Positions 26,556-29,500 of a DNA stretch of 64,000 bases are shown in pieces. Within the stretch, counting starts at the first letter, position 1. Each line of letters opens with the position of its first letter. The position numbers and the translations under genes were made by a program. The notes beneath the pieces were generated by a model that saw nothing but the letters and a program-made list of their open reading frames with translations, made no database searches and was not told the origin of the DNA. Where the stretch lies: assembly GCA_002269645.1 (NCBI GenBank), contig NIVC01001478.1:99136-163135 (forward strand), read 5' to 3'. Source of the DNA: Macrostomum lignano (taxonomy: Eukaryota).

Positions 26556-29500
26556 CTAGCAACGGGGGTTGGCGAGCTGGCGAGTTAATGACGGCTCATC
26601 AAAGCCATGTTCTTCTATGGACAGTTGCACGGTCACTCATGGATCACTCATGGGTCACTCATTGGCTCATGGGTCACTCATTGGCTCATGGGTCACTCAT
26701 TGGCTCATGGGTCACTCATTGGCTCATGGGTCACTCATTGGCTCATGGGTCACTCATTGGCTCATGGGTCACTCATTGGCTCATGGGTCACTCATTGGCT
26801 CATGGGTCACTCATTGGCTCATGGGTCACTCATTGGCTCATGGGTCACTCATTGGCTCATGGGTCACTCATTGGCTCATGGGTCACTCATTGGCTCATGG
26901 GTCACTCATGGGCTCATGGGTTACTCATTGGCTCATGGGTCACTCATGGGTCACTCATGGGTCACTCATGGGTCACTCATGGGTCACTCATGGGTCACTC
27001 ATGAGTCACTCATGGATCACTCATGGGTCACTCATGGGTCACTCATGGGTCACTCATGGGTCACTCATGGGTCACTCATGGGTCACTCATGAGTCACTCA
27101 TGGGTCACTCATGGGTCACTCATGGGTCACTCATGGGTCACTCATGAGTCACTCATGGATCACTCATGGGTCACTCATGGGTCACTCATGGGTCACTCAT
27201 GGGTCACTCATGGGTCACTCAGACAAGTCACTCAACTCACCAAAGTTCAGTCGGATCGGCGGCGCCCCGAAGCCTGGTGGCGGCACCGGCTTCGACAGGC
27301 AGGAAGCTGCGGCCGCCGCCGCGGCAGCCCGTTTGGCTGCCTGGTGAAGAAAGTCGCCGCTGGTGCAGCCGCCGCCCCGGCCGATGCTGCCTCCGGTGCT
27401 GGACGACGCTCCGGATGATGAGGAGGCGGTCGAGGCAGTCGCCGTGGCAAAGCGCGCCTGACCGGCTGTCCGAGGCCGCTTGGCCGGACAGGCAATGGCG
27501 GCCGGCTCCGAGTTGACGCAGAATTTCAGACTGTCCGGCAGGCGGCCGGCCAATCCGCGCCGGATCTCCTCTGCCGCCAGCTCGCGCAGCTCGGCGCAGG
27601 CCTGGTCGCTGTAGAAGGCCGAGCCCGGGGTGGCCACCACGTTCGGGCAGTCCTTCAGGGCGCCTGCGGTAGCGGGGAGCAGAGGGGAGAGGTGTTGTCG
27701 GACATGGACAAGTAAATTGGCCCAGGACCTGTAGCTCCCGCCCATGAGGGCCAACTCCCAAAGGCACAGAGGCGAACATGCCTGACAGTGAGAAGTCAGA
27801 GCCGCTGTACACCCTGCGTGAGCGTGTGCGTGCTGCGAGTGATTTTCACCTGACAATACACCTTTGCTCCAGTTAAAAATTCACAAGAGCTTCTGGCAAT
27901 TTTAGTGCTAAAAATGCTAAATCTTTTTGCCCACACTATTAAAGAGATTCGCTTTGCATTCTTTTCTGGCTACTTTCGTTAGTAGGCAATTGTCATTTGT
28001 GTTTAGTATAGCCTAATTATGGAAAAAGTCTAAAATAATAAATAAACTCACACAGCTACTTCGTATTCTAAGAAGCACGATTGACATGATTAATTATAAA
28101 AGTTTTGCATAACCATTTTGGGTATCTGACCCAATAATATAATCATAAATCATGCTAGAGCAGGTGACTTTATGAGCAGCTCACCATTCTCAACGTCAAT
28201 GGCGCAGCGGTTGGGCAGGTCGAGCGCAAGGCCGCGGACAATACCGTCGCGTAGGGCGTCGGCCACTGCGGCCTCGTCCATCAGCGCGGCGGAGCAGGTG
28301 TTCACCAGAAAGAAGCCTGCGGAGACCACGGGCAACCACGGAGATAGCGTTGGAATAAATTGGTCAATAAACTCTGCTGCAACATAGGCTCTTCTCCTGG
28401 ACTGATTGACAACATTCCTGTTTAGTTTCAACACTCACCTGTCTTTTTGGCGCATCGAATCGCCTGCTCGCTGATGAGTCTGCGAGTGCCCGGCCCATCC
28501 GGGCAGTGCAAACTCACGCAGTCGCTGGCCGCCACCAGCTCCTCAATGCTGCCGGCCCTGCCGACGCCGAACGAGCTCTCGACGCCTTCGGCCAGGTTTG
28601 GATCGAACACCACAACCTGGAAGCCAAAAGCCCGAGCTCGGATGGCCACAGCGGTGCCGACTCGGCCTGAGAAGAAAGAATTAAGTGCCAGAAATGCTAT
28701 AGGCTTCATTTTGTCTAGGGCCTAGGCGGAGGAGAGGGCGGTTCTGGGTGTGAAACAGATTGAGATGAGTTCATTTTGTCTAGGGCCTAGGCGGAGGAGA
28801 GGGCGGTTCTGGGTGTTAAACAGATTGAGATAAGAGTTCATTTTGTCTAGGGCCTAGGCGGAGGAGAGGGCGGTTCTGGGTGTGAAACAGATTGAGATAA
28901 GAGTTCATTTTGTCTAGGGCCTAGGCGGAGGAGAGGGCGGTTCTGGGTGTTAAACAGATTGAGATGAGTTCATTTTGTCTAGGGCCTAGGCGGAGGAGAG
29001 GGTGGTTCTGGATGTTGAACAGATTGAGATAAGAGTTCATTTTGTCTAGGGCCTAGGCGGAGGAGAGGGCGGTTCTGGGTGTTAAACAGATTGAGATGAG
29101 TTCATTTTGTCTAGGGCCTAGGCGGAGGAGAGGGCGGTTCTGGGTGTTAAACAGATTGAGATGAGTTCATTTTGTCTAGGGCCTAGGCGGAGGAGAGGGC
29201 GGTTCTGGGTGTGAAACAGATTGAGATGAGTTCATTTTGTCTAGGGCCTAGGCGGAGGAGAGGGCGGTTCTGGGTGTTAAACAGATTGAGATGAGTTCAT
29301 TTTGTCTAGGGCCTAGGCGGAGGAGAGGGCGGTTCTGGGTGTGAAATCGGCTGCCTATACGACGGCTGGTAAGATAAATACGTATGAATCACCATATGCA
29401 GCCAATATTTCTGCTCAATAATATTGCTGAATACTTGACTGAAAGGCACAAGGAACAGTCATATCTGTCAGCTCTTCTTAACAGTGGCTGTACAAATAAT

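Follow-up and report, generated by a model that had tools for sequence, protein, structure and literature searches.

The window analysed here, a 64,000-nucleotide stretch of the genome of the free-living flatworm Macrostomum lignano (Platyhelminthes, Macrostomorpha; assembly GCA_002269645.1, contig NIVC01001478.1, positions 99,136 to 163,135), contains a gene for a C-terminal binding protein (CtBP) in which all three residues of the catalytic triad are replaced. The locus is an intron-rich gene on the minus strand, running from 48814 to 27215 in eight GT-AG exons, with a predicted product of 629 amino acids (aa) and no internal stop. In exon order it encodes a THAP C2CH zinc finger, a linker, a full two-domain D-2-hydroxyacid dehydrogenase (D2-HDH) fold and a low-complexity tail. 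Because exons 1 and 2 encode the zinc finger, the predicted gene is classified as a THAP-CtBP, the architecture first defined by CTBP-1a of Caenorhabditis elegans. We propose that this is probably a functional M. lignano THAP-CtBP gene with a pseudoenzyme core, and that its product is most likely a DNA-targeted repressor scaffold, possibly responsive to nicotinamide adenine dinucleotide (NAD(H)).

Gene structure

The CtBP-like exons were found by motif search and tblastn, and each junction was placed at a phase-matched GT-AG pair. The model has canonical sequences at all 14 splice sites, and neither frameshifts nor stops occur across the 629 codons. Exon 1 (48656..48814; all exons are on the minus strand) carries the start codon and the first half of the zinc finger (C5, C10, P29 and W39). 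It was delimited by tblastn with the M. lignano database model A0A1I8IUV3 and an annelid THAP-CtBP (P0087), by a GT donor and by the Pfam THAP match. The remainder of the finger (C57, H60, F61 and the DVPV box), followed by a basic Ser-rich linker, is encoded by exon 2 (45483..45726), which has an AG acceptor and a GT donor and is also covered by tblastn and Pfam THAP. Exon 3 (44526..44848) begins with a Pro/Thr/Ala-rich linker and continues into the CtBP N-terminus, that is, the PXDLS-binding cleft, where A52 and H63 are kept. Exon 4 (43678..43822) extends from VLNEAV, with V66 kept, to VQIGPG, in which R97 has become Gln and S100 has become Pro.

The dimer-interface helices and the first two glycines of the GxGxxG motif are located in exon 5 (39799..40008), which ends in phase 1. 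Exon 6 (28439..28666) resumes with (G)RVGTAV and VFDP, and provides the third Rossmann glycine, D204 and a remodelled loop at residues 238-243. The junction between these two exons cuts the Rossmann motif into GFG and RVG, which splicing rejoins exactly across intron 5, an 11.1-kb intron full of minisatellites. Exon 7 (28185..28316) contains A265→Cys, R266→Ser, a retained D290 and E295→Cys. Exon 8 (27215..27663) contains H315→Gly, Phe318 (27616-27614), a helix and a Ser/Ala/Pro-rich tail of about 110 aa, ending at a stop codon at 27217-27215. An earlier reading, made from the letters of the window without database searches (hereafter the sequence-only reading), had drawn attention to the interval 27600-28316, which falls within these last two coding exons. 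Exons have a GC content of 0.59-0.70, with 0.78 at third codon positions (GC3), and introns one of 0.43-0.59. The N-terminal 360 residues of the model are 98-99% identical to the M. lignano UniRef entry A0A1I8IUV3 (P0004), and a further fragment of the model matches A0A1I8I8H0 of the same species.

A THAP zinc finger joined to the CtBP core

The N-terminus displays the C2CH pattern of THAP domains (C-X2-4-C-X35-53-C-X2-H with conserved P, W and F), formed by C5, C10, C57 and H60 together with P29, W39 and F61. A Pfam scan of the predicted protein matched THAP (PF05485) with 36.4 bits, above the cut-off of 23.9. The finger shares 90% identity with the N-terminus of the annelid THAP-CtBP, and nematode fingers are very similar to it. 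Our homolog search also detected the THAP type in cestodes, trematodes and one monogenean. As judged from these predicted proteins, the fusion of THAP and CtBP is widespread in Platyhelminthes and Nematoda and occurs in at least one annelid. That the finger and the core belong to one polypeptide in M. lignano rests on the in-phase GT-AG sites and on the near-identical model A0A1I8IUV3. The THAP domain was absent from the sequence-only reading, and its presence alters the likely mode of action of the protein. In C. elegans, rescue of a neuronal phenotype by CTBP-1a requires C5 and C10 of the THAP domain, and not the alanine of the PXDLS cleft (bioRxiv 10.1101/2020.06.09.143248).

Loss of the catalytic triad

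The core was aligned by phmmer to all PDB chains, matching human and rat CtBP1 and human CtBP2 (E=1e-111, 375 bits). This alignment includes two indels, each of 1 aa and both away from the triad, and is ungapped in the triad region. In canonical CtBPs, H315 is the acid/base, E295 is its partner, R266 polarises the substrate and R97 makes a coulombic contact to the substrate carboxylate (PMC5536941). In the window, Arg266-Glu295-His315 is replaced by Ser (codon 28293-28291, TCC), Cys (28206-28204, TGC) and Gly (27625-27623, GGC), all read on the minus strand. The human motifs NTARGG, ALDVHESEP, TPHAAWYS and VRIGSG correspond to NTCSAA, ALDLPNRCA, TPGSAFYS and VQIGPG, the last pair differing by R97→Gln at 43729-43727 and S100→Pro at 43720-43718 (exon 4, minus strand). 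The residues that together define an active D2-HDH (substrate Arg, His-Glu pair and the Ser/Gly of the VRIGSG loop) are likewise not found as a set, and nearly all full-length bacterial D2-HDH representatives in our exhaustive search retain R/E/H. We infer from these residues that the protein has lost dehydrogenase activity. The triad marks enzyme activity and not membership of the corepressor family, and nematode CTBP-1 is still named a CtBP.

The spliced model and the ungapped alignment reproduced every motif and codon coordinate on which the sequence-only reading had based its claim of a replaced Arg/Glu/His triad, as well as the changes at R97 and S100. That reading would have yielded to another alignment or to other exon boundaries that gave back the triad. 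Both were considered and rejected: tblastn with canonical CtBPs returned a single exon set in the window, HMMER is ungapped at all three positions, and the triad stays lost. The triad replacements are not sequencing errors, as a minimum of about 7 nucleotide changes is needed to produce them. The same reading had also treated W318→Phe as a loss that could affect tetramerisation. We rejected this candidate switch, as Phe318 is the protostome norm, present in 74% of the canonical comparison set, Drosophila included.

The distribution of changes over the core is uneven. Our canonical reference set of 34 CtBPs has 182 columns with an invariance of 97% or more, among which the flatworm protein keeps 130/182 and changes 52/182. 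All of the catalytic and substrate positions are changed (4/4: R97, R266, E295 and H315) versus 48/178 of the others (Fisher p=0.006), a pattern that exceeds chance. Radical changes cluster at 97, 239-243, 265-267, 293-296 and 315. Identity to the canonical consensus reaches 65-67% in the partner-binding lobes and 49% in the NAD domain, and exons 6-8 are 47-53% identical to CtBPs.

Retained motifs and the CtBP fold

Meanwhile, much of the non-catalytic framework of the family is in place. GFGRVG is kept (39805-39799 joined to 28666-28656), as is D204, the Asp of FDP (28604-28602), with the correct GxGxxG(17x)D spacing of a Rossmann motif. RIRG (39835-39824) and D290 (28221-28219) are also kept. 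In the PXDLS cleft region ATVAFCDAQ...HEKVLNEAV, residues A52, F53, H63, V66, L67 and A70 are identical to all 34 canonical sequences. R141, R171, R184 and G210 are shared with canonical CtBPs, and most oligomer-interface residues are retained. The NAD-contact ranges and the list of dimer-interface arginines used here are those that we take to be given in UniProt and the structural literature. The Rossmann motif, the acidic residue of FDP, RIRG and the PXDLS cleft, which the sequence-only reading had found in an intact frame, could all be located in the spliced model. Its further statement that the NAD site is kept is true of the adenine side (GxGxxG, D204 and D290) and fails for the nicotinamide side, which is remodelled at S100, at A265 and in the 238-243 loop.

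The fold predicted from these exons is confidently that of a CtBP. Both Pfam domains, 2-Hacid_dh and 2-Hacid_dh_C, match above their cut-offs. In the phmmer search of PDB chains, the C-terminal half alone scored 168 bits with CtBP1 versus 68 bits with PHGDH, the best match outside the CtBPs. The AlphaFold2 prediction has a predicted local distance difference test score (pLDDT) of 89.6 and a predicted template modelling score (pTM) of 0.85. A Foldseek search with this structure returned only CtBP1/2 among its top 20 PDB matches (TM 0.81-0.85, E about 1e-46), placing the core closer to CtBP than to other D2-HDHs.

From core residue 332 onwards pLDDT falls below 50. The composition of the Ser/Ala/Pro-rich tail that follows the core agrees with the published description of flatworm CtBP C-terminal domains as 'proline and polyalanine-rich' (PMC9907507). 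The 3' end of the gene depends on whether the stop at 27215 is used. A strong donor-like GTGAGT is present at 27240, and splicing from it to a further exon could take place instead of termination at 27217-27215. The stop codon falls at one margin of an 11/19-bp array (26631-27221), and GTGAGT is part of the repeat unit of this array.

A second copy with the same losses

An exhaustive HMMER search of 1.84 billion representatives identified a second M. lignano protein, A0A1I8H0E2 (P0246), that is 58-61% identical to the window protein. The two share NTCS (Arg→Ser), TPGSAF (His→Gly), the lost Glu, a CAKKTGF insertion, HCP and FDPNL, along with at least 21 further derived states. A0A1I8H0E2 differs in having Ser rather than Cys at 295, a 20-aa insertion before the TPG strand and a database model without THAP. 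It carries both halves of the core contiguously, with co-varying derived states in each. Because both copies share Arg→Ser and His→Gly, the loss of the active site, as traced in these two sequences, predates an old duplication. The sequence-only reading had offered a diverged paralog as an alternative to a pseudoenzyme. This was partly right, in that two or more diverged copies exist in M. lignano; the two found here are both dead at Arg and His.

The two paralogs are 76% identical at the columns that are invariant in canonical CtBPs versus 53% elsewhere (p=7e-5). Since the copies are more alike at these columns, the comparison points to purifying selection that continued after the loss of the triad. 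In a neutral simulation that ignored indels, a frame free of stops had a probability of about 0.14 when amino-acid divergence was 20% and of about 0.01 when it was 39-46%, which makes an open frame unlikely under neutrality. Taken as indirect evidence, these comparisons favour a gene that is functional rather than dead.

A canonical M. lignano CtBP was not found in searches of which the word-indexed ones miss known entries and the exhaustive one folds canonical CtBPs into 50%-identity clusters. The only M. lignano protein that the word-indexed homolog searches returned was A0A1I8IUV3. These searches missed A0A1I8IUV3 or A0A1I8H0E2, and negatives from them do not amount to absence. Within the 64-kb window, tblastn found no canonical CtBP exons.

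Comparison with other degenerate CtBPs

The closest architectural parallels are CTBP-1a of C. elegans and the nematode THAP-CtBPs, reportedly treated by Nicholas et al. 2008 (J Mol Biol 375:1). They share with the flatworm protein the C2CH THAP finger (with identical C5 and C10), the linker, the CtBP core and a long divergent tail, and they too have degenerate triads with GxGxxG and D204 kept. C. elegans CTBP-1 has R266H and E295V and keeps His315 and W318, whereas the flatworm protein has lost all five residues, including His315→Gly. The triad states of other nematodes are E/I/R in C. bovis, S/-/R in Bursaphelenchus and D/N/Q in Globodera; each of these three nematodes has lost all three residues. 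These proteins belong to Nematoda and not Platyhelminthes, and because the replacement residues differ, the losses in the two phyla would be independent. In many nematode THAP-CtBPs and one nematomorph homolog, at least two of the three triad residues are gone (P0251-P0257, P0259, P0260 and P0267).

Canonical CtBPs such as human CtBP1/CtBP2 and Drosophila CtBP show a core identity of 53-55% to the flatworm protein, with the same fold, cleft, Rossmann motif, D204 and D290. They differ in having no THAP domain and in their intact R266/E295/H315, R97 and S100, for which the flatworm has S, C, G, Q and P. Canonical CtBPs have measurable dehydrogenase activity with 4-methylthio-2-oxobutyrate (MTOB; PMC5536941). 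Arabidopsis ANGUSTIFOLIA is likewise a CtBP-like protein without conserved catalytic residues; it is only about 30% similar and non-orthologous, functions in the cytoplasm and on microtubules, and shows no repression when assayed in animals (PMC9907507), whereas the flatworm protein is a clear ortholog or paralog of animal CtBPs. A springtail protein, ODM94696.1 of Orchesella cincta (P0282), displays convergent Q97, P100, S266 and N315 with GxGxxG kept, but is 38% identical and has no THAP domain. The springtails O. cincta and O. dallaii have a canonical CtBP (P0010) together with 4-5 diverged paralogs with degenerate triads (P0258, P0269, P0273, P0275 and P0282). Almost all of the degenerate-triad homologs that we surveyed keep GxGxxG and D204.

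Some matches were set aside. P0307, which has His→Gly (TPGVAFYSD), was not accepted as a second flatworm lineage, since the sequence stems from a bioreactor metagenome, shows only 37-45% identity and lacks GxGxxG as well. Its gene (ENA ERZ922514, 1071-3121) is treated as an independent degenerate case. P0023 and P0305, from metagenome or transcriptome assemblies of micro-metazoans, are CtBP-like genes with His→Asn. The top-scoring Acipenser sinensis 'UNVERIFIED_CONTAM' matches (P0001-P0003) are not close relatives: they are canonical vertebrate CtBPs whose exon blocks are artefactually duplicated 2-3 times, which inflates their bit scores.

According to a published survey, nematodes are the only bilaterians in which the triad is not conserved, with just one of its residues lost, and protostomes generally have a single CtBP gene (PMC9907507). 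The survey's flatworm sample consists of parasitic flatworms and triclads, with no Macrostomum, and its supplementary alignment is without flatworm cores. Triad retention in other flatworm CtBP cores is taken here from the text statement of that survey. Our literature search returned no paper treating CtBP and Macrostomum together in substance. A dead-triad CtBP is not a new category; the flatworm case, with complete loss, THAP fusion and two old paralogs, is undescribed.

Proposed role and alternative explanations

Collectively, the residue alignment, the spliced model, the Fisher enrichment and the predicted CtBP fold support the pseudoenzyme proposed by the sequence-only reading. In our model, reduction of 2-keto acids would be impossible and the protein would act purely as a scaffold. 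The THAP finger would target DNA directly, the cleft would recruit partners with PXDLS motifs, and the core, as a dimer or tetramer, would bring repressor complexes together. As the adenine-side pocket is intact, NAD(H) may still influence oligomerisation through it.

Several observations weigh against this model. The nicotinamide side of the pocket is altered, with S100P, PDGPGT at 238-243 instead of xLNEHN, and A265C, and the interface residues R163 and L215 are changed. For these reasons NAD(H) binding and NAD-dependent oligomerisation of the protein are plausible rather than assured. In Drosophila, active-site residues are reported to matter in vivo (work cited in PMC9907507). The gene model itself is a prediction from genomic sequence, splice signals and homology. 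No database protein spans exons 6-8 in our homolog search of the protein collection, and exact look-ups of A0A1I8IUV3, of a neighbouring transporter open reading frame (ORF) and of the last-exon ORF gave no encoding contigs. A0A1I8IUV3, the only near-identical full model, swaps exons 6-8 for two exons in intron 5. Finally, residues ~44-95 of A0A1I8H0E2, equivalent to exon 4, are out of frame, matching the +2 frame of exon 4 in the window, before the protein returns to frame. Either an error in the assembly or the model, or a genuine frameshift or decay, could explain this anomaly.

The swap in A0A1I8IUV3 leads to one alternative, in which exons 6-8 stand outside the main product, the expressed form is a truncated THAP plus N-terminal lobe, and the triad exons are either decaying remains or belong to a minor isoform. 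Within intron 5, tblastn of A0A1I8IUV3 identified two candidate alternative 3' exons (36602..38893, minus strand; ~38893-38824 and 36731-36602 onward). A polypyrimidine-AG acceptor is present at each of them and a GT donor at the first, acceptable signals that would let exon 5 be joined to them. They would yield a THAP and half-CtBP product without the NAD domain, and a truncated isoform of this kind is possible. As the main product we consider it unlikely: these exons have no homologs and A0A1I8IUV3 derives from an early draft annotation, whereas the phase-1 junction restores GFG and RVG exactly, exons 6-8 are open, GC3-rich and similar to CtBPs, and the two halves adjoin in A0A1I8H0E2, each with derived states that co-vary. 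A pseudogene, unexpressed or recently dead and evolving neutrally, would fit the full loss of the active site and the 49% identity of the NAD domain, which resemble relaxed constraint, as well as the frame anomaly of the second copy. We regard it as very unlikely in view of the uninterrupted 629 codons with 14/14 canonical splice sites, the concentration of changes at the active site, the constraint that followed the loss and the low simulated probability of an open frame. Hardly more credible, and if anything less so, is a pocket rebuilt for another ligand or chemistry, such as redox or metal sensing by Cys265 and Cys295. These two cysteines do replace A265 and E295 beside the nicotinamide site, and the 238-243 loop (HCPDGPGT) is nearer to the nematode HxPLTxxT loop than to that of canonical CtBPs; presumably it also resembles the equivalent loop of generic D2-HDHs. 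Yet A0A1I8H0E2 has Ser295, so that the Cys pair is not conserved, and no general acid/base replaces His315, which is Gly in both copies.

A much more serious contender, though one we lean somewhat against, is that the dead THAP-CtBPs are subfunctionalised extra paralogs, for example hetero-oligomerising modulators, beside a canonical active CtBP elsewhere in the genome. Orchesella, with its canonical CtBP and several dead-triad paralogs, provides a precedent, M. lignano does duplicate this gene, and our searches leave room for a canonical copy. The usual single CtBP gene of protostomes and the lack of canonical exons in the window speak against it, as does the loss shared by both copies, for which the simplest history is a loss in the sole ancestral gene followed by duplication. 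If extra paralogs were nevertheless the answer, the molecular description given here would hold and its biological significance would be smaller.

Neighbouring features in the window

Other genes were predicted around the CtBP locus. A 688-aa single-exon ORF of the amiloride-sensitive sodium channel family is encoded at 4413-6479 on the plus strand (Pfam ASC, 169 bits). It is followed on the same strand by exons of a BACK/Kelch-repeat gene (10372-16356), in which BACK lies at 12672-13307 and three Kelch motifs lie at 15670-16356. The 5' part of this gene may be the ORF at 10372-10830 (+), for which Pfam gave no match. A 348-aa single-exon ORF on the minus strand (18304-19350) encodes a cytosolic sulfotransferase (Pfam Sulfotransfer_1, 223 bits). 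The transporter ORF mentioned above is a 400-aa single-exon MFS transporter (23451-24653, plus strand, Pfam MFS_1), tail-to-tail with the CtBP gene at a distance of ~2.6 kb. More than 30 long minisatellite arrays, with units of 7-161 bp and up to 86 copies, fill the introns and intergenic DNA of the window, for example at 1836-3817, 30269-32121, 41349-42401, 50389-53198 and 55309-57161. Several of them create long spurious ORFs, such as one of 511 aa at 30268-31803.

Implications for CtBP function

Whether dehydrogenase activity has a role in repression by CtBP is a debate now two decades old, in which repression persists in mammalian H315 mutants but is impaired in active-site mutants of Drosophila (PMC5536941, PMC9907507). 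In M. lignano, a flatworm capable of transgenesis, CtBP genes have shed the catalytic residues, and the fold, cofactor motif, partner cleft and THAP finger persist under what reads as lasting constraint. This natural experiment supports scaffolding and NAD(H) sensing, and not catalysis, as the conserved function of CtBP. Our findings correct the picture drawn in the literature, as triad loss is not restricted to nematodes and is often complete, recurring in nematodes, a nematomorph, springtail paralogs and a flatworm.

Since protostomes usually have one CtBP and both M. lignano copies share the loss, a history in which the sole ancestral gene lost the five residues and was then duplicated is favoured over one with an active copy at its side. 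The springtail precedent and the scope of our searches nevertheless bring the existence of such a copy close to even odds. Macrostomum, and perhaps all Macrostomorpha, may have no catalytically competent CtBP, a suggestion that we put forward tentatively and with some doubt. If true, corepression by CtBP would here, for the first time in a bilaterian other than a nematode, be wholly free of dehydrogenase chemistry, and this would contradict the published claim that the triad is conserved in all bilaterians but nematodes.

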